A stretch of 64,000 nt of DNA from the NCBI GenBank assembly GCA_965202585.1, contig OZ241828.1:39742001-39806000 (forward strand), read 5' to 3'. Below the pieces are notes generated by a model, which had not been told where the DNA came from, did not search any database, and was given only the letters and a program-made list of their open reading frames with translations. A program made the translations under genes and the position numbers. Origin of the DNA: Thalia democratica. Lineage: Eukaryota. Position 1 is the stretch's first letter. Every line of letters begins with the position of its first letter. Of the stretch, positions 18,949 through 64,000 are shown piece after piece.

Positions 18949-19371
18949 TTACATTTTGACAGTTTTTGTCTTGCAGATATCTGCGGTTCTGAGCATTCTC
19001 AGTTGCTTTTTCTTCATCCTCTTGATTTTAGCAGGGTTTGTTATAACTTGTACAACTTCAGACTTTCTCTGATTTTCTTCTTTAGTCTTCTTATGAGCTT
19101 CTACACGGCGTCTGTACTCCAATTTCTCTTGCCTTTTAATTTCACCAAGTTCTGCTTGATAGGCTTTAAGACTATTCAACTTTTTCTTTGCTGCCATTTT
19201 TCTTTCCCAAGATGACTTCAGTGGCTTGTCTTTTCCCATTGAAGTGAACCTTTGCTTGTTTGATTTCCAGGGCCTTCCAGATTTAGGAATACCTTTTACA
19301 TTACCACTAGCATCTAGTAACAGGTTCTGTTGGCTAGTAACAGAATTGGAAGGTGTTGCTACTTTAGTCAT
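18949..19371 (-). CDS. CCDC86: CCDC86 (Cgr1-like ribosome biogenesis factor), single exon, 140 aa
   Basis: ORF contains KGIPKSGRPWK...SSWERKM...EENQRKSEVVQVITNPAKIKRMKKKQLR, the CCDC86 signature. Confidence 0.93.
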   Translation of the reverse strand: MTKVATPSNSVTSQQNLLLDASGNVKGIPKSGRPWKSNKQRFTSMGKDKPLKSSWERKMAAKKKLNSLKAYQAELGEIKRQEKLEYRRRVEAHKKTKEENQRKSEVVQVITNPAKIKRMKKKQLRMLRTADICKTKTVKM

Positions 19372-29331: not shown

Positions 29332-30480
29332 TTAAGTTTTAAAGCAGAGCTTTTGGAAATGTGGACAGTTTGCAAATAGTTCGTACCTCTTATTTAAGTT
29401 GACTTTTTTCTTAGCATTGGCTATCTCTATTTTTTCTAAAATACAGGTTTTGCAGATGCTATGTATGCTTTTAATTTCCCCAATGTGGTGAAGGATGCTC
29501 CATTTTATGTCGTAGGTGATTTTTTTATGTTTCAAATGCCAAATGTATTTTGCTAGTTCGGTCCCGTTATCTTTATAATTTTTGAAACTGTTGTTGTGGT
29601 TGGGACACGTTCAAAATCCACCCGCAATCAAAATCCACCCGCGATCAAAATCCACCCGCGATCAAAATCCACCCGATCAAAATCCACCCGATCAAAATCC
29701 ACCCGAGTCAAAATCCACCCGATCAAAATCTACCCGGTTCAAAATCCACCCTATGTTGTGGTTGTACCATCTATTTTTAAAAGTGTTTCCGGTCGAGCCG
29801 ATATAATATTTTATTTCCTTTGGAGATGTTATCGTAGCTTTGTAAATTAAATTTTTTATTAAACATTTGTTATCCAAGGGGCATGAGTTTTTTGATCGGC
29901 AGTTGCAGGATGGGTTATTGGTGGTGACGTTTTGTTCTTCGGTTTTGTTGGTTTTATTTAGAGTTTTCTTGTTATGTTTTTGTATTATTACCTTAATATT
30001 GCTCATACAGCTGTAAGATAGTTTACAGTTATTTCTGTTTAATATTTTATTTAATGTTTCGTTTTGCTTGCAGTGTTTATTAGTTATCTCGAAAAATGCT
30101 TTGCCGATGTTAGTTTTTACGGATTGGCAGAAAGGGGGGTTAAAGTAAATGATTTTCCTTGATCGGTTTGTTTTCTTTTTAGTTTGGGTCTTTACATTTT
30201 CTGTATATTTTAGCTTATGCTTAAAGTTGGCATTGTTTAAAGCATTTTGGTATGTTGCTACGTGGTTGTTAAATATTTGTTCATTTTTGGAAAGTTTATT
30301 AATTCTCCTCTTAATCATCGCTGGGAGGTTTCTTTTTATAACTTTAGGGTGATTTGATTTGTTATTTATATATCTTACTTCTGAATTTTCTTTGCGGTAT
30401 GGTTTATATATATTGTTAGTCAGGTTTAAAGTTGTATCTAAGAAATTACATACGGTTGTGCCATAGGAGTGAAACATTGT
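29332..30480 (-). mobile_element. 5'-truncated Penelope-like retroelement (end of RT + GIY-YIG endonuclease), interrupted by a 152-bp insertion
   Basis: NFLDTTLNL...YKPYRKEN...YINNKSNHP (RT thumb region); IIYFNPPF; LIYKATI...YYIGSTGNTFKNRWYNH (GIY-YIG). After the insertion the frame resumes NSFKNYKDNGTELAKYIWHLK...CKTCILEK...LNKRYELFANCPH. Confidence 0.92.
29603..29754. mobile_element. 152-bp insertion of nine direct TCAAAATCCACCCG-like units, flanked by a perfect 10-bp TSD
   Basis: GTTGTGGTTG at 29593-29602 and 29755-29764; removing the insert plus one TSD copy restores the PLE reading frame (WYNHNNSFK). Confidence 0.92.
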
Positions 30481-31294
30481 TTTGTTTGTAATAAACTGTT
30501 AAAATAAATATTGGATATAAATCTCCTTAAAGACATTTAAGTCGAGAACTTTAAATTGTTTGATTTAAAACAAGTTACATTAATAAAAAGTATATATATG
30601 TAAGTTTTCTAAAATTCTTTGGTCAGTTGTGCTCGACAAGTTAAATTGCAGCTAAATATATATATTGGAACTAAGCTTTAGCTTTACTGAAGAATATACG
30701 AGATAGAAATATGTTATATACTAAACGGCTGTATAAAACTGTTGTTTGTTATATAATTTAAATATATTTAGAAAATAGTATATTTAGATTAACTGAATCA
30801 CCTTCCACAGAGCCCAATTGAAGAGCTTTGAAATAGTTTATCTTGAAAGTTCGAATTCAAATATGATTATTTTTTAAATCATCAGCTGTGTTTGAATTTA
30901 ATTTTTTATTTACTAATCATTAATATTAATACTAAGGTTATACAAAAAAATACAAAAAATAATCTGACATTACAAAGACGTAAAATAAACTATTATTATT
31001 AAGTTTTATTAGATTTAATATTTTTTGTTTTCTCTTAGAGCTAAAATTATTTAAAGAAACCTAATATATTTAAAGTACTGTCAACTAGTTATTAAAGCAT
31101 AACGATTACTATCTTTAATCTGAACTTATAACTTTAACTATTGCACAGAAATAGTTTTTATTTTGAAATAAAAAACTATAGTATCAATCAGATTTTAAGT
31201 TTTCATCTTTTTTCATTATTAAATTAAAATGGGATGAAGGTAGTCTTCTCTTTTGATTTTAAAGACCGGACAGGATTGAATTTTAGATAAATAA

Positions 31295-48965: not shown

Positions 48966-51900
48966 ATGTCATTGCCAACTACTTTAACGAAGTATGAATT
49001 TTCAAAAGTAAGTTTTGTTTATTATTAAAACTTTTATTTACTACAGAACTATAATACTTTTGTTACTTTAGTTTAAAAAATTTGAAAATTATTTGTTAGT
49101 AAAATTAGAATTAAAGATATAAATAAAGTCATAAAGTTTTCAATTACCATGTTGACTTTAGTTTATTTGTTTCAACTCTCTTTTACCAGTATAACAGGAA
49201 GTATCAACTGCGTTAACTTACATAAACAATGAAAAACACACTTAAAAAAGTCTTGTTGTATTTCGTTCAAAAATCAAAAAATTTTTGATGTAAACTGTAT
49301 TTTTTATCATATACTTTTAAATTGATTTAACATCTAACAAAATGAATAATTGATCAAACAAAACTTTTACTTTTAAGTTATTAATAGTATTTTGTGATGT
49401 TTTAACTTTAATTCAATTTAAACTGCAGTTGATCACACATAATAAAAAATACTTTTTTTAAACTTGTTTTTAATTTGTATTTGTTACACACTTAATGATA
49501 ACAGCCTTGTTAATTTTAGGTTGAACTACATTGTCATTTAGATGGTACTTACCATCTTTCTTCAATAGTTGAAATGGCAAAGTTAGTGTTATCATTGTTA
49601 TTTATTAACTTATTATGCTTTATCTTATGTCAACCTTCGCAAACTATCTTAACAGTTTTGTTCATCTTAAGTTTAAGCGTAGTTTTTAAGTTTTGTAAAA
49701 AAATGAAACTATAATTTATTTAATATCTCATAACGCAATTAAAACTGTTCAAAACAATTTATTTAGTTTGAGAGTTCAATTTAAAAATTTAAAGTTACAA
49801 ATAAACTCTAAAGAATTTCGAAACTTTATGTTAAAAATTGATAGAGTTTATTTCACAACAAATCAAACTAGCGATAAATAATGTAAATATTATTCGCAGC
49901 CAAAGTTCAATTAATTTCAAACTTGTTTACGCTTAAACCGTAAATTGAAGAATTGATTTAGCAATTCTTATGTTAAAAAAAATTATACGAAACCTATTTA
50001 ATTAAAACTTTTTGTACTAATAATGAGTGTTTTATTTACTTTTAACAAAATAAAAACTTATATACTTTGAAAACTAAAAAAAAACAGCAAGTAAAGATTT
50101 TAAAAATTTAATTACCTCAATTAAGTACGTAAAAAAGTTTATAAATTTTTACTTAAAAAAAAACAACTGTAGAAAAAAAAATACAGCTAGTAAAGGATAC
50201 AAATTAAATCAAACCTAGAGCAAATTTTTCGCACGTTTACTAAGTGTTTAATTTTCTAACACATCACTAACGAAAATTAAAAATGAACTATAGTTAATTT
50301 AACCTTCATAATTTTTATAGGTTAAAAAAACTTTTTTTTTTAAATTAAAATGAAAAAATAATAAAAAGGAGCAGGGGAGTCAAGCTTCCATCTTTTGACC
50401 CGGTGATGCTATCGAAGATGTACTGCAACCTGAAAAGATGCGACAGTCTCGACGATTACTTGAGAATTTTCATGGTCGTCGGCCCCGTCTTTTTGTGAGT
50501 GATGGTATGTGTGGTTGTTTGAGGAGAGCAAAAAAAAAAGACTAAGAAACAAAACAGTTTTGTACAACTAAGTTGCTATATAGACTTATTTTTAAATTTA
50601 ATTTTTTAGGATAAAAATATTACCAAACATACTTTTTAAGTATTTTAAGCCGCTTCTGACTAAAATGTGCTTTGTGGCTGTGATACCCTTCACTTGAGTT
50701 TTATTTGCTCCGCTAATTTTTTCAATTTCACACAGCTGGTGTTTTATTTGTTTTACTCTATTGTTATTTGCTAATACAATTTAAATTTATGTATCTAATT
50801 GCTAAAAATATTCATTAATAGAGGTCATCCAGCAAATATCCAAAGGTTAGCAAGAGAGAGTGTAATAATTAAAGCAAGTTACGGTGTCAGGTATATTGAA
50901 ATGAGGTACTCCCCTCACCTTATGCTGGAAGAAGATTCTGCAAGGTTTTTAACAAAATCTTATATTTTAAAAACTCAATAACTATTTAGGGAAAAGCGAG
51001 TTTATGCTAAGATAAAAGTAGCAGAAAAAGTTATAATTATGTATTAAAAAGTCTTAAATTTTACAAAACGTAGTCTTTCAATGATCATAAATAAATACCA
51101 TGGAGAAATATTTATTTATTTAGCAATCGTACACTTTTTAAAAGCAATCTATAACTTTAAAACTTCTCAAACTAATATTCTCAAAGTATTTAGATATATC
51201 ATATAGTTTGTATAATTTTGAAACAAAGCACTTAAAATGGATCATCTTATTAAACAGTTCTAAAAATAACAGTTTTTAGAAAATTTGCGTACTTGACATT
51301 GTTTAAAAATACCTTAAATGTTGTTTATTTTTTTGTATAAATAAACTAGCAAGGGAATAGGATGTAGAGAAATCATTCAAGCGGTAAACATTGGATTCAA
51401 AGAAGGCATGGAGGAAGTGAAAAAGCAAGGAAAATCAATAGAAGTTAGAAGCATATTGTGTTGCGTTATATTCAAGCCTGGTTGGTTTTTATATTAGTTT
51501 ACTTGAATTACATATTTTTTTGTGTATTAAAATTATTGTAGTTCAAAACTAAAAATAAGAACTACTTAAGAAATTATTAAAAAGATAAAAATAAAGTACA
51601 AAATAAATAAACTTAAGTATTATTATTGAAAAAGTTTATTGTACTTAATAAAAAAATTGTTTTAGTGTAAAAAATGTAAATGTAAAAACTAAAATACTAG
51701 AAACTTATTTTATGACATACACGTACCTAAACGTAACAAGCACAAAAACTATGTTGACATTTTTCTTATACAAGTAAATTTTAAAAGTTTTATTGTGTCT
51801 TGCACTGCTTATAAAAAAAATAAAACTTTTCTTGTTTTAACCTAGTATGTGTGATTTTCAAAAAGTTCATTACTATTTTTTACTACTGATTTCCGAAAAC

Positions 51901-54632
51901 AAAATCTATTTATATACTAAACTACACAAACATTGATACAAAAAACACAATAGTTAAGTCTTAAATGTATAAAAAACTTTAACCTACCTCTATGGTTAAC
52001 TTTTAACAATCAGACTAGTATTTCCAAAAGTGGGTAATATCGCCTCTTTGAGATTGATTTTGGATATTAGGGGCAAAAACTAGTGAGTTGGAGATTAATT
52101 ATATGTGTAAGTACCTAGTAAAGAGACGATTACTAATAAATTAAAAAGGACTTTTTATTAATTATTAAATAGGTGTTTTAGTGAAAATGAGTATGGAAAC
52201 CCTTATTAAACACATAAATTTGTCTTAGGAAAGCAATACCCGTAAGACGCCTTCTGAGGTAAATGAATTTTTATCACAAACAAAACTAATAAAACCTTTT
52301 GCAACCAGAATGGTCGATGGAGGTGGCGGAGTTGTGTTTGGAGTTTAGAAACGAAGGAGTGGTGGGCATTGACGTGGCGTGCGCTGGCGATGAGGAAGGA
52401 CACATGATTCTCAACCACAAGGAGGCTTTCGATGTTTGTTGTACGAAAAATATAAAATGCATTACTTGACTGCTAACTTTATTTTTATAGTTAATTTAAA
52501 AATATAAACTGTTTTTTCAGTTTTGCTTAAAACACGGTATTGGAAGGACGGCTCACGCCGGTGAGAAAGGTAGTTCCAATGAAGTTAAAAATGTGAGAAT
52601 TGTTTTATTGTATCAAAAATATTGCAGTAAGCTTTTAGCTGTAAAGAAACAGAATCTTGAAAACTTATTTGCATCAAATAAACTTTAAAATTTTACATAA
52701 AAACACACCAAATATATAGAAAAAATATAACAACTTTTATTTTATTTATTAAAAGTATGTTTTTACTATTTGTGTTTTGGTTTAAAAATTATGTTTCTTT
52801 TTCTTTAACAAAAAATATTTTAATAGATTACAAACTGTTTAAAATGTTTTCATACTATTTTATTCCTGGTCTAACTTTATTTAGTGCTTATAACAATTAG
52901 ATTTTTAACGACAATCTAAACTCGTCTAGATTTAAAACAAGTACTGTTTATCAAAATTAAAAGTTTAGAAGTCACAAGTATAAAAACATGAAAACTTCAT
53001 ATTTAAATTAACTTAAAATAAATAAATTTTCAATTAGTTTAAATTTATTTTTAAATTTTTTAATTTTGCAAAAAAGGCAGTGGAAAAGCTACACGTTCAA
53101 AGGATAGGACACGGTTACCATGTTTTAGATGATGAAGAGCTTTACAAGAAGTGCATCGAAGATCAGATTCATTTTGAAGTTTGCCCGCTTTCAAGCTATT
53201 TGACAGGATCAGTGTCCACAGATATGACTGTACATCCCGCTGTTAGGTTTATAATAATAACAATTTCAGTGCAACTTATAATTAAAACAGGTGATACTTT
53301 TAAATTGCTGAATTAAGTAGATTAATATGAAACAGTGTCACACGTATCTGGAGAATAAGTAAAAGTATGGTATACTTACCCAAAAGTTAAAACTTAAAAG
53401 TAAGTTTACTGGACGAGAAGTAGCTCTATAAAGTTTAACTATCTTACATACACAAGCACTATTTTGTCTAATAACTTTTTTTTTCTTTTTATTATGAATA
53501 GTTATTTTTTTTTAGTAAGTTATTTATGATCAGTGAAATATTTTTAAATATAGATTTCAGGCTGACGGTCTCAAGTTTTCTCTGAACACTGATGACCCCG
53601 GAGTTCAACAAAGTTCGATTATAGATGATTACGAAATTGCAACTAAAAGTTTTGGTTTTAGTAGACCAATGTTATATCAAAGCGTAAGTTAATCAAAACT
53701 ACTTTTTTTAATATTCTAAAACCTGTGAACTAAACTTAAACAGTGTATTTTAAATTTAAATCAAAGTCTTTAAATTTATCGTTGTTACAACTGTTCATCT
53801 TAAAAACAATTAAACTTAATTGTTTTTATCTTAAGTTGAATTTATTAAAATGCAGCGTTAAGATATCAAAGTTATTATTTTTTAAATTTAAAGTTTCAGG
53901 TCAAAAATGATACCAGTTTAGGTTTTATCTAGTTATCTTTACTTGGTCTTATCCAAAAAATTTATATTTAAAAGTAGTAATAAAGTTGTCTCTTTGAGAT
54001 GAATTAGTTTTATATTAAAGTTTTAAGCCCACGGAATTACTGTAGTTGAAATTTTATAAAGTTAAAAACAGTTTTACATATTTAGTTTAAAGTGCAACAA
54101 TTAGAACTTTCGATTTGAGTTCAATGATAAGAACAACTACATTTTAAAGAATTAAAGTAGCCATCTAATTATGTTTTGTACTAAATGATTTTTAAATTGT
54201 ACAGTGGTACAAGTTGTATAATCCTGATTAAATCATTTAAAAGTTTATTACAATACAATGTTTCTACCTACCATACAATACTTTTTGTTCAATTATCAGT
54301 TTAATTATAACTAACGCTTCCAATATGCCGAATCATTAGTTTGTAGGAAGTATATATTATTTTCCTTGATATGAATTTGAGAATTACTTATTTTTCTAAA
54401 TTTAACATCACAATAAAGTTATTCAGTACACAAAACATAAAAATACTAATTTTATGAATTTTAATTTAAATATTACCTTATAACAAAAAACATAATATTT
54501 TATTAGAATATACATGCAATGGAAGCCGCATTTGTAGATAAAGTAACAAAAGACGCTTTTCTAGAGGAGCTGAAAAATGAATACCAAAATATTAGAACTA
54601 AAAAGCAAAATGAAAACTGTACTTATTTGTAA
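48966..54632 (+). CDS. ADA: Adenosine deaminase (ADA1-type), 10 exons, 368 aa
   Basis: Exons 48966-49007, 49520-49581, 50369-50494, 50822-50944, 51350-51480, 52309-52433, 52521-52592, 53077-53246, 53554-53683, 54507-54632 total 1107 nt, phases consistent. Motifs VELHCHLDG, EMRYSPH, RSILCC, RTAHAGE, RIGHGY, EVCPLSS, SLNTDDP. Exon 1 (MSLPTTLTKYEFSK) is the least certain. Confidence 0.95.
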
Positions 54633-57600
54633 GAATTACTTACTTATAAAACATGTTATTACAATTATTACCACTGTACTAAATACTTTAAAATTTTTAA
54701 AATTGTGCTAAAAATTTATTAACTGTATTATTTTGATGTATTTTTTAATAAAAATGTTTTTTAAACAGAAGTTTTACTTTACATAATTATATATTGTATA
54801 TGAAAAATAAAAAATGTAATTTCTCGAATAAAGTAAATGTATCTCTATTAAAACGTTTTATTTAGAATGTTAAATTAAAAGTGAATTACTTGTTTTGTAA
54901 AAATAACTATGCTTGATTTAAAGAATAATTTTATCTTGCGTATTGTAGAGAATTTCTGATTTTATTTATATAAGGTCGCTGATGTTTTGTAAATAAATCA
55001 AAGCAAAGCTTGAAAACTACTTTTTAACTTTTATTATATACATGTCTAATGAAAAAAACAGTTAACTACTTTATGATTTAGTATGCCTTTTTATCTAAAG
55101 CATTGTTTATAAATTCAAAATTAGAACATGTTTAGTTTAATTATATTTAAATAATGAAAATAAACTTTCTATGCATAAAACTATTAACAAGAAGTATATT
55201 ATTTTTAGTTTGATTTTTTGTTGCTCAAACCAATGGTTTCAAGTTTGATAGTTTTTTTTTTATAGTTTGCGCACAGTAGATCAATGAGAAAAAACTTCAA
55301 TGCACAGTAGAATACTTGTTTAGTTTTTAGCATTGTACTACAAATGCGATTCTTATTTAAAATCGTAAATTAATATGGAATCTCTTAAAGCTAACTAAAA
55401 ACTACGAGAAAAACTTTTCATGATAGAACTAAATATAACTTTGTATTAAAATCAAAATTTCATTTAATAATTTTAAAGCGTGTGAATAAACATGGGATTT
55501 TTTGTAAAATCAAAACATTCTATATGCTTTCTCATAAAATTTTCCCAATTTCCAAAACAACATTGTTTATTTGTAGGAGTTAATTTAATTCCGATGCGTA
55601 TACATCGGCGTTTGTCTTTAAAATACGCGTTAGTTTTTAAGTTGTGCTGTGTGCCGTTTGCCGTCTTAATTCACGATGAAGTTCGCATGATCAACGAATC
55701 ATCAAGTTAAACTCAACATCTAGTTTTGAGCTACGAGTTTAAGAACATCGAACATCTAGTTTTGAGATTAAGAATATCTAATTCGTTCGTCCAAACTGTT
55801 GGTATATATTTATAATTTTTATGATTGTTAATACTTTCGACAGTTTTTACTTGGGTAGTGATTTAAACAGTAAACAGTTTGTTTCAGAATTGTTGTAATT
55901 AATATATTAATAATAAAGTACATCGAATCTTAGTGTGTTTTATTTTATAAGTTAGGAATAAGTTACCTTAAGTAAGACAAATATTATTAAGTTTAGTACT
56001 GTAAGCTACTTTTAAGTAAAACTCGTAGTTTAGCTAAGTACATGGAGACCACATATTTAAGATCATAAACATAACCAGTATTATAAATATATCTTTGTGG
56101 TTATAACTTAAACTTATTTCTACAATATTTTCATTACCCATAAAACTTTCAGTGCAGAGTAGAATAGTTTCTTTTTAATTTGTTGAAATATTAGCCGAAC
56201 AAAAAAGTTGTAGAAAATGAAGATATTTTAAATTACAGTCTAAAACATGACAAGAGTAAAGAGCTTTTATTTATAAAAGAAGTTAAGTCTAGACATATGT
56301 AAGTGTACTTATATAAAACCTTAAAGGAAGTTACTACCCACGCTCTACAAATGAACAAAATGAAAGGTTATTGAACTCTGAGGTATATATTTTTTTATTT
56401 TCAATATTAAATAATGGTTAATTTACTGAGTTAAGAGCTTATAATTTAATTTTTCAGGTAGAAAAACGGTGAGATTTATTAAAAAATTGTTTAAGTTTAA
56501 GCTAAACTAAAAAGATATACATCTTCATAATAAATACTTCTTAATAAATGAAAATATTAAAAATGGTCAAAATAGTATGTGTTTTTTTTGAATATATTGA
56601 AGTTTTTGATATAAATGTATCTTAAACAATCAAAAATTTTAGGTGTTTAAAAAAACTGTTTATTAAAAAAAAATATTTTACAAAGACAGAATTATATCAG
56701 CAAAGAAAAAAACTAGCTTAACAGCTACTGAAATATCAATAAAAAAGGTTCCTAAATAAATAGTCTTAAACTAAATATAAGAAAAGCACGATTCATAGTT
56801 TAAAAATGATGATAAAAAGTCTTAAATTTTTAAGCAGAAAAATTTTTGTATCAAGCAAGTATAACTATCAACGTTTATTGAGTAGTAAAAAAATAGTAAG
56901 CTTTACAAATTTCATATAATATAATTGTTCTTAATAAGTTCAAGAGAAGTAAAATAGATGTAAGTTTTAATACTGTGAACTGACGTAATTTGTTCAAAAC
57001 AATTTTTTCAAAAGTAATTACAAAAATTTTAATTTTATAAGTAGTTTTCATTTAATATAAGGCTTGCTTCAAGTGTTTGAAAACATGTGTTACCTCTCAC
57101 AATCATAGTTGTCATAGTTTGAGTTTTTGTATATTTAGCAATTGTAAATACTATGAATTTATAGCGTATATACTTATGATTATACTTTATTGCATAATAT
57201 AATTTTAATAGTTTAAAATGCTATAGAGTATAAGGTTTATGACTGCTAGATTTTTAAGATTTATTTTTTAACAGTCCATATTTAAAGACAAGCTTACAAT
57301 CAATTATGATTTTGTAACCAAATTGTAACTACGTACGTTGGTCATCCACATGAAGTTGCAACTGATGTTAAGATGGAATAACCAGAGAGACTGTAGATTA
57401 ACCTAACTCAGTCGGAGTTTGAAAATAAAACCTAAAAACTAAATTTTATCTTAGGGTCATTTGTTACTACTATACTTTTACGAAAAAATAAATGTGTTTT
57501 ACACTTTTTTACACCACAAAAGTCGATTAAATTTGATAAAGAAAAGTAAATTAAAGATTATTATTATGTAAATAAGTAGATGCAAGATTCACATTCTAGA

Positions 57601-59556
57601 TCTAGAGTAAGCTCGTTTTTCTTAAATTTTGTACAATGACACTAAAGTTGCTAAATACTTTTTAATATGCCTCGTTTATATCTTTTTGTTAGATATATGT
57701 TTTTAAAACAACTTATGTTACAACAAAAATAGTCGCAAATATATATACCACTGAATCAGTATAGCTGCAAGTCAATAAATTATTAATTATAATTTAAAAA
57801 TTAACCCCAATAACTTAAGAAAAAAATAAGAAAAGTTTTCAAAAGAAGCGAGTTATTATAAAATAACACTTTTATCTTAGTTATACTTCTACTAAGGTCT
57901 GTTTGAATAAGTGTGTTATAAAGACGTGAAGTAAGCAATTGTGGTTAAACTTTAAAAGGTACTTACTACGTCCTCCTCTGCGTGTGCTTTTTTATTGGTG
58001 ATAACTTTACTACTAATATGTGAAACACTTATCGCTTTTCTCTTGACATTTCATATTTATCAACACAAAATAAAATACAGTAATTGAAAAACAAAAAAAA
58101 CTGTTAAAGTTAACCTGCATACAAAAAATAAAAACTAACAAAATCTATACAGGAAAAATATACACACAAGTAATTTAAAACAATAAGATGACTTACAGAT
58201 GTTGTTCCAAAATTTTAGGAGAAACCAAAATACACCTTAGAAGTTTTTGAACCGACTGGTTTCATGCCGTTTACAAATGAGGACTAACTTAACTCTGTTT
58301 CTTACAAACTTAATCTTACCAATTAATTCCCACAAATAAGCTTTTAAATTGTTTAGTGTACTTAGATGCCAGAAAAACTACTCCTTTGACTTGTTTATTT
58401 TAACGAATTACTTACTAAAACTTCACATAATGTTTGTTTATACAAATACTTACTTTTTTATAATTTTTTTTTTAAATATTGAAGAATTATATAGTTAAGT
58501 CTTATTTCATTACACACTTTCCTAAGATTTTAAATAAATTTTTTGATCATGTAAAAAGTAATCTTTTAAGTATATTTTCAAAATTTATCTAACTTTGCAG
58601 TAGATAAAATTGTTCCTAAAATAATAAGAGTACAATTAGATAGTTATATTTGATACTTTAGATAGTTATTGCGTTTATGGAAAATTAAAACAGAACTAAA
58701 GGTAAAACTTTAATAAAAAATACAAATTTTTGCTCATGGTCTTAAAGTTGCATTTGACAAGAATACACGTACTATTTTTTCTACCTTTACTATAATTTAT
58801 ACCGCAGTGCATATTAAGTGTTATGAGCAGGTCTCAGGCTGCTACGAATCTTCAAAAATAAAATCACACAGCAAATTACAAATTTGTTTTTGACAAAAAT
58901 AATAAGTAGGACCTGATTTGTTTAATAGACTTGAAACTTCAATACTGCGTTGAAAATAATTTGACACATTTAAAGCAGGTCTTAAACTTAAGCATAAAGT
59001 TAATTGTGACTTTTTTTATATAACACCTTTTTTAAATTTCGTGTAAAACTGAACGTTTTAAAAGTTATTATTTTTTGCAGTAATTTATTAAAATTAAGGA
59101 TACTTTTTAAATCAAAATCCAGCTTGGATCTGAAAATTTAAAGCTATTAATGATTAATTATACTTCAAATACAATTTTATGTTGTTTATTACCTATGATA
59201 GGGGTGGGTAACTTTACTAACCCCTAAATACCCAAAGAAGTGAATATGTAATGAAGTCTATCGTGTAATTTAAAAATGACTAAAAAGCTTAACAAAACCT
59301 AAAATTAATTTGAGAATGTAAATCCTTTAAAATTTTCGTAAAAAAATTTAAATAAAAAACCTATCCTTTTAGGCAAAATGAATTTGACTATAGTGTTGCT
59401 TTATTTAATGCTGTTTTTGGTGTTTATACGTTTGTATTTAATTAGCTCTATTAATAAGTGTTTTAATTAGTTTTGTGTTATTAAATTTGTATGTAATTAA
59501 TATTTGTTTTTGATGAATACTACTGTTACTTTAAAAGTTAAATTTAACTTTTATAT

Positions 59557-59622
59557 ATTCGATAACCGAAAGGTTTTTCGTTCTCAGATCGTTGGACCAA
59601 ACTTTTTTGTCGTTCAATAAAC
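59557..59622 (+). repeat. Partial copy of the ~120-nt structured element
   Basis: ATTCGATAACCGAAAGGTTTTTCG...GTTGGACCAAACTTTTTTGTCGTTCAATAAAC. Confidence 0.75.
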
Positions 59623-61431
59623 TATATATTGATAAGTATCCTCTGACGAAAGTAGCGTGAACTATATCTGAATTTTTGCACTGAGTGTCTTTTATATACT
59701 GTTTAAAACAATTTATTTTAAATTCAAATACGTTTGTATTCAAGAAAGATTTAACTTTTGTGGAACTTGTATAAAACGGACATTATCTTTTCGAAATTGC
59801 TCAGTTGATACTACTTATCGCAATTTGCAGAGTTTCTGACATTTAAAAGTTTGATAAGTAATTTTTAATTCAGACTTTTGGAAGAGTAGCTCGCACGCAG
59901 AATCAATTCAAACTGCAATATTCTTAATTTTTAAGCACAACCCTTTGTTCTTATAACCCAAACAAAATCAGCCGTGGTAAAGATAAACAAGACTGTTGTA
60001 GTGTTCTACATTATTTTCAAATATGTCTATGGATCAAACTTTTCTTGGCTTGAAATTAGTCAAGAATTGGAAGATAAGTCTAAACTAGCGATTCCTAACC
60101 TGGAGTAAATTCCCTTGTATTAGGGGGTAAATTTTCTTTATTACAAGTTAAGTAAATTAATATTTAATAATTGTCTTTTTAATTTATATACTAGTACACA
60201 TTTAACTGTATTTTATAAAATTAAATAAACTCCTTCAATTTCACGATTTTTTATATTTAATAAACTTAAAATTCGAAAAATCTAGTTTTTTTCTAAAAAT
60301 TAAACACTATTTTGTATTTTGAGGGTAAGTTTAGTATCAACCTTCTTAAAAAGGGGTAAAACATAAAAAAAAGAACCGCTGGTCTAAACGATATTTGATT
60401 TGCAAATTAGGCTTTTATGAAGATAAGCCATAACAAACTATTTAATGAAACATTAAAAAATACTTTAAGAGTAGAGCCTGGTTCTTTATACGTTTAAAAG
60501 CAAACTGCAAATAAAACAACAATTAAAAATTAATTAGAAGTTTTTTCAAAAACAACTCGATAACAACTTTTTATTGATAAGTAATTAAATACCTTATGTT
60601 TTCAAAAAAGGCATACTTACAATTAAAGTATAAAAACACAGAAACAGCCATTACTAAAAATTTATTCAAACAAATTCTTGTATGTATAATTTTATTTATA
60701 TTTGAAAAAGACACATCCATACATATATTTTCAAAATTTTATTTTCCTTAAAATACTTATAATTTTTCAGAGCTTCGTCTAGATACGTTACCAATTTATT
60801 ATAGAGAAACGTAGTTAGTATCTTAAACTAATTACTTTTAATATAGTTGTTATTGTAATGTAAAAAACTTGTTTTGTTCGGATCTTTTTATTATAAAAAT
60901 CGATTAACAACTGATATATTAAAGACTAGTATAACAGATATTAAATTAAAACTGACTGCTTCTTTTTAACAAAAATGAAACATATAGGCAAACTCAAAAC
61001 AACCAAAAAAAATTTACTAAAACAATTTCCTAATCAATTTACTACTACGGGTAGTAAAAAGCACTGCCGATAAATTTAAGGAAACAATTTTAGTAGCAAA
61101 TGTTATTATTAGAAGTGTATTGCTTATTCATCATTTCTAAAAAAAAAAAAACGTATAGTTACTTTATAAAGCAGTTACCAAAAATTTTTCCAAAAAATTT
61201 ATTAAAATCAAGTAAAAAATATTTTTTATTTGTTTTCAAAAATTAATAAAACTAAAAAGCACGGAGACACATTAAACAATATAGCTGTTTACTTATGCCA
61301 CATTGCAAAAATTAACCGGGGCGCTTGTGATAAACATTTTAAAAGCGAACCTACTATCAAGTCATTGATCTGTCTCAAACGCTCGATTTGAGTCATAAAC
61401 AAACAAAAAGTACAAACAAGCGATGAGGGGC

Positions 61432-64000
61432 TCATTCGCCGCGGCCAAAGTACGTGTTGATGTTGTTCCTGAAGGCCCTCATGGTGACGGGGGGAGCCGG
61501 CTCGCTGTCCTGCTTGTGCCTCCTGTACCGCTCCTCGCCCTCCTGGAAGTAGCTGATGGTATCCATGTCGAAGCCGCACATTATCTTCCCTTTCTGCGAC
61601 AGTCCGCGGTGGAACCTGTTCAAGTACTTTTTTTACACTGCATGTAATGTTTTTTCTCTGTTGCTTACCTGAGTTTTAATTTTTTCTAGAGAATAAAAAT
61701 TACAAAGTTTTATGATATACAACGTACTTTTTTTTCTATCTTCGTTTTCTGGATATCAGAAAAAGTTAAAAATCACAACAAGATTTCTTAAATAATAGTT
61801 ATGACGAGGTTTCAAAAACGATTACAATCAGAATAGTTTTTAGAAAAACATAGATTATAGTAAATGTTTTATAAATATCATTTAATTAAAAAATTCTAAG
61901 TAAATTATGCTGCATAATTTATAACACCTTTTAAATTTTTCTATTTGATGTTCACAAAAGAACACTTTTCTGACTTTAATTACCAACTATTCAAATGAAT
62001 AAAGCAAAGAGTTTAGTGAATTAGTTATTTAAATAAGAAGTATAATATCAACTGAAAAATAAAATAAGTTATGTCTTACAACTTATTTTAAACTAAAATA
62101 TGCAGTAGACTCATTAAAAACTACAGATTAAATAAAAACACTATTGATGTAAAACTTAGCTTCATATCTATATGAGCTGGGTGCAAAATTATAATTAACA
62201 CTATACTTCACAGATAAAAAAGAGAGACAAAGATTATACTTTCTCTTACTTTATTAAATGTCAAGAATTTTAATTTCTTAAAATTTTATTACAGTATAAC
62301 TATCAAAAACCTTGCCATTTTTGATAGGCAATCTCTTATTTTCTCAAACTTAAAACAGTTTTTTTTTAAATTAGTATCTTATGAGCGTCTTATTTAGGAA
62401 GAAATGAAATTTTAGCAAGGACTTAAAGTGACGGTTCTTACCAAACACCTCGATGTGCATATATACGTACCAACACGACAACTCACCTGTGAGGCACTTC
62501 TTTCAAAGCTTCGATCCAGTTGTTGGTTTTTTTCAGCTTCAGCAGGATGTTCAACACGGTGTCGAGGTTGAGGTCCTTTCTGGCAGTCACCCCGCCGAAG
62601 TTCAAGTACTCCTTCAGCGGCAAGCTCTTCACGGCGATCTTCTCGTTGTAAGCCGTCGTCTTGGTCAGCCACCTCGAGCAAGAAGAATCCACCAGCGCTC
62701 CTGGTAGAACGAAGTTTGATATGGTATAAAAAGCGCGTGCTTCACAATAATAAACCGTTTTATTAAAAGAACATTTATCTTAAATGGTGAAAATTTATAA
62801 CCCGTTGAACTGCGCTAAGTCACAGAGGGATACGTCGTTTTCAAAGTAAAATAAATATTCTAAAATAATGTAATCAATCTTAAATAGTTAAACATTATAC
62901 ATATTTGTAAAAACTATTATTGTAGATTCTCGAAAAACCTATGACGTAGACGCTCCTGGGGTTGAACTCTTCCAAATGTTCGTCGGCGTCAGGGCTGAGG
63001 TAGACGATCTCCTCGGGAGAAACGACCGGGGACAGGTCGAAGTAGGACTTTCTGGTGTACTCGAAAGTTTCGCCCTCCATTCCGTCCGTTTTCTTCACCA
63101 TCGTCAAAAACTGCTTCTCGAACAGCGAGTCTGCAGATATTATGATTCTACTTGTTTAATATTTTCAACAAGTCATTTTGATGGTACTGAAACGCTTGAC
63201 TGCAGAAACGGTGCAACAAAACTTTCAAGCTATAAGAATTAGATATTTTCTAAACTTTTACCGTAAGCTAAATGTTTAAAAAAGTTGGTGTACTTGCAAA
63301 AACTGGCTTTAATTGTTTAAAAGTTAAAAAAAACTTTAATTCAGTCGATTTATAAAGAAAACAATAAAACCTTAATAAAGTGTAACATACTTAAATAACT
63401 ATGCATCATCAGTTACTCCAAATTTTTATAATTTAGGCAAAAATTATATGCAAAATATACAAAAATCTTAAGTTTTAAACCAAAACGTTTAGCTGCAGAA
63501 ATGGTGAAATCAAAACTTTGAGTAATACGCAAAAATGTTTGTTTTATATCATATTTACCATAAACTTATTGTTATACTAATTGGTAAACTCACATAGATA
63601 ACTTCAAATTGATAATAAATAGTTTTTTTTTAACCGAAATATACAAAAACTCATTTTAATTGTATTAAAAACTTAAAACTCACAGTTAAAATAATGCTAC
63701 AAAAAAATTGACATAATTGGCTACTACAAAAAAGTTTTACAATTAAGGCAATCGTACTTACATTATATGCAACATACATGCAAACCATCAAGTTTTTCAA
63801 ACAGCTCAAACGTCACCATCAAACAGTCAAAAAAGAAAAGAAAAGCAACCACCTTGCTGAAGGTTGACGTGGATCATCCTGAACGGGTCGGCCGACGACT
63901 TGTTGATGGTGTGCAGGGACTGGAGCTGGTCGATGACGTTGTGGAACTTGTTCAGCTTCGGGTTGGAGAACCGCATGTCGACTATGAGCGGCTGGCTGAT
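61432..64000 (-). CDS. TRMT10C: TRMT10C / MRPP1-like tRNA m1R9 methyltransferase, 3' exons; gene enters from the right edge
   Basis: Exons 64000-63853, 63130-62939, 62700-62487 join in phase: SQPLIVDM...DPFRMIHVN...IVYLSPDA...VYVIGALVD...LPLKEYL...LNLDTVLNILLKLK..NNWIEAL..VP, the TRM10 SPOUT domain. The QPL.xDM and DPF motifs point to the TRMT10C clade. A further GC3-rich exon (61637-61432) is off by one base as assembled. Confidence 0.85.

Follow-up and report, generated by a model that had tools for sequence, protein, structure and literature searches.

Exon-by-exon differences in third-position G/C content amid AT-rich introns of Thalia democratica

The base composition of coding exons was analysed in a 64,000-nt stretch of the Thalia democratica genome (GenBank assembly GCA_965202585.1, contig OZ241828.1, forward strand; C4:39,742,001-39,806,000 in our numbering), referred to as the window, and at further loci of the same assembly (801.8 Mb, chromosome-scale contigs). 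The window has 25% GC, an observed/expected (o/e) ratio of CpG dinucleotides of 0.73 and no runs of N; no tRNA or other RNA genes that could be a source of GC islands were found in it. Positions 48966-64000 carry an adenosine deaminase gene (ADA) on the plus strand and, on the minus strand, a TRMT10C-like gene that is cut by the window end (Table 1). An earlier note, made from the sequence alone, had reported that the fraction of codons ending in G or C (GC3) alternates between neighbouring exons of single genes and had proposed a local, exon-centred process acting on the DNA. Its codon counts were right to within one codon per exon, and exact for the TRMT10C-like exon at the window end.

The ADA model consists of 10 exons with GT-AG borders throughout and encodes 368 amino acids. 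Pfam A_deaminase (PF00962) matches lie on its exons, the product has its nearest named relatives in ADA of Ciona, Clavelina and Styela (43–45% identity), and the full-length A_deaminase domain with its catalytic motifs, together with orthology to chordate ADA, assigns the gene to the ADA1 group. A protein from a Joint Genome Institute (JGI) metatranscriptome (P0152) matches the model with 97.8% identity across all 368 residues. Most junctions are fixed by spliced RNA contigs from three metatranscriptome runs (marine metatranscriptomes contain the ADA locus), which join 49526-49581 to 50369-50494; 50425-50494 to 50822-50942 and 51348-51429; and 53090-53243 to 53551-53683 and 54507-54661. Exons 2 and 3 thus occur on a single RNA contig, as do exons 3, 4 and 5.

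The GC3 of the ADA exons ranged from 0.10 to 0.69 around a gene-level value of 0.39, and this heterogeneity was highly significant (chi2 = 44.9, 9 degrees of freedom, p = 1e-6). The G/C content of the first two codon positions was homogeneous across the same exons (p = 0.62), and the introns between them were uniformly AT-rich, as had been claimed (0.19–0.275 GC). The observation that GC3 changes several-fold between neighbouring exons of one gene is thus confirmed, and GC3-rich and GC3-poor ADA exons are present on one transcript, as the spliced RNA contigs show. Contigs from an independent DNA run (X6) pass through exon-intron-exon borders over 50367-51770 and 52052-53204; given this contiguity, the mosaic is not an assembly chimera. 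A conspecific cDNA (L045) differs from the window by 2.7% in the coding sequence (CDS), and the ADA pattern is kept in it. Over 49400-53400 the X6 contigs differ from the window by about 0.3%; in ADA intron 9 (53406-54032) they differ by 51 substitutions and 8 indels in 627 nt (about 8%), which looks like a sharp edge of a haplotype block.

Table 1. Exons and adjoining intron segments of the two genes, in window coordinates (GC3 as G/C-ending codons over codons counted; UTR, untranslated region).
Feature	Position	Strand	GC3	Evidence and remarks
ADA exon 1	48966..49007	+	4/14 (0.29)	Start codon; 5'UTR and start match cDNA L045
ADA exon 2	49520..49581	+	2/20 (0.10)	Lowest value; RNA contig joins 49581 to 50369
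ADA exon 3	50369..50494	+	29/42 (0.69)	GC3-rich; RNA contigs link to exons 2 and 4
ADA intron 3 start	50495..50524	+		G/T-rich; 0.46 GC at intron +7 to +30 (50501-50524)
ADA exon 4	50822..50944	+	13/41 (0.32)	RNA contigs, GT-AG
ADA exon 5	51350..51480	+	16/44 (0.36)	RNA contigs over 51348-51430; donor inferred from frame and GT
ADA exon 6	52309..52433	+	28/42 (0.67)	GC3-rich; RNA contig 52308-52433; Pfam A_deaminase positions 138-191
ADA exon 7	52521..52592	+	8/24 (0.33)	Frame, GT-AG, full-length P0152 match
ADA exon 8	53077..53246	+	21/56 (0.38)	RNA contig; Pfam A_deaminase positions 203-269
ADA exon 9	53554..53683	+	12/44 (0.27)	RNA contigs link to exons 8 and 10
ADA exon 10, coding part with stop	54507..54632	+	10/41 (0.24)	RNA contigs; 3'UTR (cDNA L045) 0.17 GC
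TRMT10C-like exon, cut by window end	63853..64000	-	46/49
TRMT10C-like exon	62939..63130	-	51/64	Weak Pfam tRNA_m1G_MT match; one-frame splice model
TRMT10C-like exon 3	62487..62700	-	57/71	PDB match to human TRMT10C/MRPP1
Intron start after TRMT10C-like exon 3	62427..62486	-		60 nt, 0.43-0.47 GC; predicted
TRMT10C-like last exon with stop, inferred	61432..61615	-	54/61	Phase-compatible AG acceptor, single frame over four exons

The TRMT10C-like gene was modelled with four exons in one frame, with GT-AG at each junction. Its SPOUT TRM10 domain is closer to TRMT10C than to TRMT10A/B: the best PDB match of the stretch 62489-62698 was human TRMT10C/MRPP1 (E = 3e-5, as compared with E = 0.5 for TRM10), and the Pfam match is weak. 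All its exons are GC3-rich (0.80–0.94) and its intron cores have 0.24–0.25 GC. If the predicted four-exon model is correct, the segment 62427-62486 would be intron rather than 3'UTR. At the donor of exon 3 (CAG/GTGAGT, 62484-62486, minus strand) an in-frame TGA starts at the final exon base, and retention of the intron that follows would truncate the protein by 60 residues.

Whether such heterogeneity is general was assessed in 25 genes with 127 exons, taken from chaperonin (PF00118) and kinesin (PF00225) loci in 23 regions; seven kinesin genes and the loci of the EF-Tu family were left out of this sample. Exons were located by a six-frame hidden Markov model (HMM) search of the genome, and splice sites were assigned as a chain constrained by reading frame and HMM coordinates, a procedure that recovers 9 of the 9 RNA-supported ADA junctions. 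The overdispersion test against a binomial model that the earlier note had suggested gave a pooled within-gene Pearson chi2 per degree of freedom of 4.48 on 100 degrees of freedom, and 13 of the 25 genes were heterogeneous at p<0.05 (7 at p<0.001). Gene GC3 ranged from 0.22 to 0.85; genes at the baseline (0.22–0.30) were homogeneous, and the mosaic was found in genes with a raised mean. Exons are short (20–60 codons) and their GC3 values noisy, but with the ADA statistics, this pooled dispersion, the RNA and X6 contigs and the full-length P0152 match, the probability that the mosaic reflects sampling noise, mis-annotation, contamination or chimera is practically negligible, and the doubt about contaminant or chimeric sequence that the note had raised is excluded by the RNA and X6 contigs.

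Open reading frames (ORFs) of intronless kinases spanned a GC3 of 0.23–0.79, with flanks always at 0.21–0.28 GC, and GC3 was patchy within long open frames. In one uninterrupted kinase ORF (L013, C2:23.36 Mb), codons 330-390 form a lysine/glutamate-rich linker with a GC3 of 0.23–0.27 between domains of 0.83–1.00, which shows that a GC3 patch need not end at an intron. At C8:12.3-17.8 Mb and 53.5-53.8 Mb, intronless protein-kinase genes form large tandem arrays in which dozens of Pkinase matches are nearly full-length. Single open frames also hold many domains of kinases, kinesins and the EF-Tu family. In one chaperonin gene (L031-L032, C6:44,997,954-45,014,111) the 3' 347 codons (HMM 157-487) form a single exon and the 5' part consists of three small exons with introns of 2.7–7.3 kb, a layout that suggests 3'-biased intron loss.

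The excess of G/C stops at the borders of the coding sequence. Intron cores (more than 40 nt from splice sites) had 0.20–0.26 GC whether the GC3 of the gene was 0.23 or 0.71 (rho 0.02, slope 0.002; 19 genes, 70 kb). Isochore-scale composition therefore plays no part, in agreement with the earlier note, and the raised GC in introns and flanks that is expected from classical GC-biased gene conversion (gBGC) was absent. Next to GC3-rich exons, the first 20 nt of the intron had 0.34–0.36 and 0.21–0.25 GC, as compared with 0.25 and 0.14–0.16 next to GC3-poor exons (75 predicted junctions); past 20 nt the difference was at most 0.03–0.06. A bleeding of elevated GC over 50–70 nt into introns had been described at two sites, and both are real (see the two intron segments in Table 1), but the typical excess over these junctions extends for about 20 nt only. 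Inside GC3-rich exons, GC3 was 0.55–0.57 at 0–9 nt from the edge, 0.61–0.68 at 9–18 nt and 0.72–0.82 beyond 18 nt. The transition from exon to intron thus spans about 40 nt with the splice site at its centre, and G/C-ending codons are depleted at exon boundaries, as a trade-off between splicing and translation predicts. With these sharp edges, and with GC3 deviations of neighbouring exons that are uncorrelated at any intron length, the exon is indeed the unit of the pattern, as had been proposed. A similar drop was seen at stop codons. In the TRMT10C-like gene a GC3 of 0.88 gives way to a 3'UTR of 0.43–0.33 GC over about 180 nt and to 0.07 at the AATAAA signals, the fall from 0.88 to 0.43 taking place within 30 nt of the stop and inside one exon; in eight intronless kinases (a small sample that includes paralogues) the values went from 0.74 to 0.26–0.35 for about 120 nt and then to the baseline.

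Within the coding sequence, the shift is nearly confined to third codon positions. Across the 127 exons, GC at the first and second positions (GC1 and GC2) was unrelated to GC3 (rho 0.08 and -0.02, respectively). Between GC3-rich and GC3-poor exons, the odds ratios (OR) for the exchangeable amino-acid pairs K/R, I/V, N/D, K/E, F/L, S/G and Y/H were 0.84–1.14, those for T>A, S>P and S>A were 1.5–1.8, and usage of Gly, Ala, Arg and Pro (GARP) was 0.223 versus 0.206; the covariation of GC3 with GC1, GC2 and the balance of GARP to Phe, Tyr, Met, Ile, Asn and Lys (FYMINK) that classical gBGC would produce was not seen. At third positions the OR was 5.3–14.7, depending on the four-fold box; in two-fold boxes it was 8.2 for T>C and 4.4 for A>G (difference p = 0.002), and introns showed no strand skew by which differences between boxes could be explained. 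Synonymous first positions gave an OR of 2.5 for Leu and 0.9 for Arg. In exons of the middle GC3 class, third-position G/C was 0.24 where all four neighbouring bases are G/C and rose to 0.61 where all four are A/T; the same test was flat in introns. The excess thus sits at synonymous positions and is bounded by the coding sequence, as expected of codon selection. Wobble restriction, flat introns and the drop at the stop codon together imply that the main force sees the reading frame, which no process at the DNA level can do. The mechanisms favoured in the earlier note (short-tract gBGC, nucleosome- or methylation-dependent mutation, conversion from cDNA or a divergent allele) therefore fit poorly, because each should act on every unconstrained exonic base and on the nearby intron.

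This also bears on an exon-specific mutation bias, in which germline CpG methylation, nucleosome occupancy or exon-targeted mismatch repair would shift the balance between AT and GC, and which we consider very improbable. CpG dinucleotides are kept in GC3-rich exons, as the note had stated (o/e 1.03, versus 0.59 in GC3-poor exons and about 0.6 in introns), and thaliaceans are reported to have lost several base-excision repair genes (PMC13746493); both would suit such a bias. However, mutation is blind to the reading frame, and GC1, GC2, the first positions of Leu and Arg codons and the UTRs do not follow GC3. The G/C excess was as strong or stronger in non-CpG contexts (0.91 versus 0.42 with T at position 2 and A as the next base), so the difference is not carried by CpG sites as methylation-driven decay would require, and the 40-nt transition at splice sites is sharper than the footprints of nucleosomes or histone marks.

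Several properties of exons and genes modulate GC3. In genes above the baseline, longer exons and exons further along the protein had higher within-gene residuals (rho 0.57, p = 0.001 for length; rho 0.37, p = 3e-4 for position); the mean GC3 was 0.37 in N-terminal HMM segments as compared with 0.49 in later ones. Flanking intron length showed no relation to the residual, and splice-site strength, measured by crude scores, showed a weak positive trend that was not significant (rho +0.17 to +0.20). Allowing for depletion in short exons and at exon edges lowered the dispersion from 4.48 to 3.52 and thus explains part of the variance only. Between genes, GC3 fell with distance to the nearest chromosome end (rho -0.56, p = 4e-5, n = 47, points that are partly non-independent through tandem copies), from a mean of 0.63 at 0–10 Mb to 0.33 at 40–60 Mb, and the same relation was seen when chaperonin (CCT) genes (-0.74) and kinase genes (-0.53) were taken separately. 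Distance to the chromosome end served as a proxy for recombination, and genes were ranked for expression by expectation only.

Two further candidate drivers were considered. Protein conservation fits the kinase catalytic cores and the lysine-rich linker described above, but it was rejected as a general cause, being contradicted by the most conserved ADA exons (2, 8 and 9), which are GC3-poor, by the CCT genes (bits per amino acid, rho -0.38) and by orthologues that lack the pattern. Breaking of A/T runs, as an avoidance of frameshift hazards, is not supported as the driver: third-position G/C rises only until the potential run length reaches 3 and is level beyond that.

The exon-length effect without an intron-length effect and the sharp splice-site edges would also be expected if G/C at free exonic sites marked exon identity during RNA processing. 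With introns of about 78% A+T, selection could favour G/C in exons to avoid their being taken for introns, spliced internally or cleaved at cryptic poly(A) sites, and long exons would need it most. Any G or C would serve, which matches a shift that is indifferent to the codon; GC3 deviations are exon-autonomous, some long intronless ORFs are GC3-rich, and A/T runs of 5 or more number 2.2 per kb in GC3-rich exons versus 5.4 in GC3-poor ones. Nevertheless, we regard this explanation as quite improbable. Such selection should also act on synonymous first positions and favour conservative amino-acid replacements, yet both are nearly unchanged, and the plateau beyond run length 3 is not what it predicts. 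Many long intronless ORFs and whole multi-exon genes are evidently functional at the baseline of 0.22–0.30, the relation to splice-site strength is not negative, and the chromosome gradient would follow only if the efficacy of selection varied.

We tentatively prefer another reading, in which the mosaic arises because codons ending in G or C are selected for while mutation is strongly biased towards A/T; this is a possible explanation, held below the level of a firm conclusion. A very strong AT-biased mutation pressure would hold introns, intergenic DNA and third positions free of selection near 22–25% GC, which is plausible because thaliaceans reportedly lack SMUG1, MUTYH and MPG (PMC13746493). 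Selection on G/C at the wobble position would be coupled to translation, through decoding and/or a translation-dependent stability of the mRNA (a 'GC3 codon optimality'). Because the species is hyperdiverse, its effective population size is probably very large, and a 4Nes of roughly 2–4 could push third positions to 70–95% G/C. Between genes, efficacy would depend on recombination, hence the rise of GC3 towards chromosome ends, a gradient that would follow if frequent recombination made selection more effective. Within genes, 5' exons, short exons and codons up to about 20 nt from a splice junction would be under weaker selection, which fits a trade-off with A/T-rich splicing information.

A number of observations weigh against selection of this kind. 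C- and G-ending codons rise in equal proportion in every box, NCG included, and the CpG o/e of GC3-rich exons is 1.03, which looks like a generic push from A/T to G/C (W>S) rather than adaptation to particular tRNAs; in a test for a match to the tRNA pool, the boxes did differ (the OR values given above) and GGA and GAA persisted, but the C:G ratio among G/C-ending codons was unchanged. The small GC halos seen over 20 nt of intron and in 3'UTRs, together with the OR of 2.5 for Leu first positions, form a minor non-wobble component. Gene-level GC3 is also out of line with expected expression: CCT genes (mean 0.58) do exceed kinesins (0.41), but the TRMT10C-like gene and the tandem kinases (0.78) exceed most CCT subunits (0.43–0.73) and are the highest, and ADA lies only about 7 kb from the far richer TRMT10C-like gene. 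A logistic model with gene, log length and position lowered the dispersion from 4.48 to 3.21, which is still 3.2 times binomial, and about 70% of the excess within-gene variance lies outside exon length or position. The objection of the earlier note that translational selection works on whole mRNAs is fair in this respect. The residuals of neighbouring exons were no more alike than under random permutation, and their difference was independent of intron length, even below 300 nt. For want of a lag-1 correlation and of any dependence on intron length, drift of linked blocks and regional patches were rejected as causes.

Comparisons among ADA sequences weigh in the same direction. In ADA cDNAs of four other thaliaceans (55–62% protein identity) exons 3 and 6 are not raised, and in one of the four it is exon 2 that is high (0.65). 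The pattern thus belongs to the lineage and does not follow the protein. Between the window and L045, ADA exons 4 and 5 (50831-50942 and 51365-51461) show nine W>S changes and one in the opposite direction (S>W), clustered and directional. All 11 differences are at third codon positions (ten synonymous, one Ile/Met), and nine of the 11 have A/T in the window where the cDNA has G/C, all nine being transitions. Exons 3 and 6 show five S>W changes and no W>S. These haplotype differences look like conversion tracts. Selection for G/C-ending codons thus leaves a large exon-autonomous and lineage-specific remainder unexplained, and our preference for it is limited because the shift is codon-agnostic, does not fit expected expression, leaves most of the variance unexplained and is accompanied by conversion-like haplotype differences.

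Much of this remainder would be accommodated by a gBGC that is confined to exons, the main rival but a doubtful explanation in our view, in which heteroduplex between homologues or paralogues of a hyperpolymorphic genome would form mainly in coding exons, where identity is high and indels are lacking, and biased repair would raise G/C there, more so in long exons and in regions of high recombination. It would account for the rise of GC3 towards chromosome ends, the codon-agnostic W>S shift with an unchanged C:G ratio and undepleted CpG, the effects of exon length and exon edge, the 20-nt intron halo, the intermediate GC of 3'UTRs, the exon-autonomous and lineage-specific pattern, the clustered directional synonymous haplotype differences and the missing link to expected expression; in plants, introns have been reported as barriers that give rise to GC steps (PMC4684703). 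Three kinase paralogues (L020, L021 and L022, at C5:62.59 Mb, C792 and C5:62.70 Mb) also seem homogenised in the coding region only. On the L020 branch third positions differ by 2.3% versus 18% for the aligned flanks, which could be coding-limited ectopic conversion or, in part, the result of misaligned AT-rich flanks; the trio has too few third-position changes to polarise substitutions. On the other side, a process that converts whole exons should move Leu first positions by more than the OR of 2.5, Arg first positions at all, and the exchangeable amino-acid pairs, and it does not predict that T>C and A>G boxes differ without strand asymmetry in introns. The zero response of intron cores would need a barrier of more than 20-fold to arise from a difference in mismatch density of about 3-fold, the steep drop at the TRMT10C-like stop codon (0.88 to 0.43 over 30 nt) lies in a single exon, and neither the neighbour dependence of third positions nor the 5'-low gradient is predicted. 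In its strict form, with exons as autonomous units of homology-gated gBGC in a hyperpolymorphic and indel-rich genome, introns as absolute barriers and exon length setting the conversion frequency, the proposal is unlikely.

Overwriting of single exons by conversion from cDNA or from a paralogue would be another route to exon-autonomous composition. The 3'-biased intron loss and the many intronless genes suggest that recombination with reverse transcripts takes place, and GC3 tends to rise from 5' to 3'. However, 3'UTRs should then be hit most, but they have only 0.17–0.43 GC, and copying alone leaves composition unchanged. ADA is without a close paralogue, and a paralogous donor for its exons 3 and 6 was rejected: the sole other A_deaminase locus (L063, C8:46,935,406-46,936,389) is an intronless ADAL-like adenosine deaminase with a 357-codon open frame, 25% identity to ADA, a GC3 of 0.23 and a flank GC of 0.20. 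We consider this explanation most improbable.

In a published comparison of tunicates (BMC Genomics 2026, PMC13746493), T. democratica is listed with 790.7 Mb. Its GC of 25.3% is the lowest among the 38 tunicates compared, and its CDS GC lies about 17 points above that of the genome. The gene-level GC excess of coding sequences in this species is therefore already published; the distribution of gene-level GC3 was described as broad, and mutation bias, codon selection and gBGC were considered without a resolution of the cause. That work is at the gene level only and has no analysis of exons, intron flanks, UTRs or chromosome position. Neither GC nor exon composition is treated in the Salpa thompsoni genome paper, and exon-autonomous alternation, wobble restriction, flat introns and the effects of length, position and chromosome were not found in the literature searched. 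We rate the mosaic as an extreme variant of known codon-bias heterogeneity.

The likeness to known systems is partial in each case. One such system is selection on synonymous codon usage with preferred codons that end in G or C, as in Drosophila. In Drosophila, according to one study (PMC2741454), translationally optimal codons are reduced near exon boundaries, and in mosquitoes intron content and codon bias are antagonistic (PMC3804240). As in such systems, the shift in T. democratica is confined to the wobble position, is low at edges, in short exons and at 5' ends, opposes an AT pressure and is stronger where recombination is expected to be high. Unlike in these, its amplitude is far larger (GC3 0.10–0.94 versus introns of 22% GC), C and G rise equally in all boxes with no tRNA signature, a link to expected expression is not evident and there is an exon-autonomous residue. 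The GC steps associated with plant introns (Ressayre et al. 2015, PMC4684703) also occur at introns and have the exon or inter-intron segment as their unit, but they form a monotonic staircase from a high 5' to a low 3' end, shift amino acids and have been attributed to gBGC in the external regions of genes, whereas here the order is irregular with low 5' exons, amino acids are unchanged and introns are flat. With the gBGC landscapes of birds, mammals and the honeybee (PMC4290106) the mosaic shares the rise of GC3 at chromosome ends, a generic W>S shift and the keeping of CpGs; unlike in classical gBGC, GC of introns and flanks and amino-acid usage are unshifted.

Third positions can thus be 80–95% G/C amid introns of 22% GC, at a level that switches between exons a few hundred bases apart. 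A neutral baseline adjoins each exon, which makes this an unusually clean system for separating codon selection from biased conversion, a long-standing confound, and would let the limits that splicing information, exon length and recombination place on codon optimisation be measured. If homology-gated gBGC were true, it would be a new mode, and the fine-scale history of conversion could be read from exon composition. For this genome, gene finding based on GC3, estimates of synonymous divergence (dS), codon models and corrections for composition in phylogenomics must be applied per exon and not per gene.

Of the other genes in the window, AIMP1 (about 13.8–18.4 kb) and STIL (about 0.6–1.5 kb), both cited in the earlier note, lie outside 48966-64000; AIMP1 exon 1 has a GC3 of 9/34 and two STIL exons have 0.22–0.24. 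A CCDC86-like gene with a single exon (18952-19371, minus strand; 140 amino acids from the first Met, GC3 0.36) is located directly upstream of AIMP1 exon 1. An ORF of 268 amino acids with a GIY-YIG-like motif (29695-30498, minus strand; GC3 0.37) lies beside a short tandem repeat (29581-29774) that reads KSTR/QNPP in three frames, and the region 29581-30498 is probably the remnant of a Penelope-like element.

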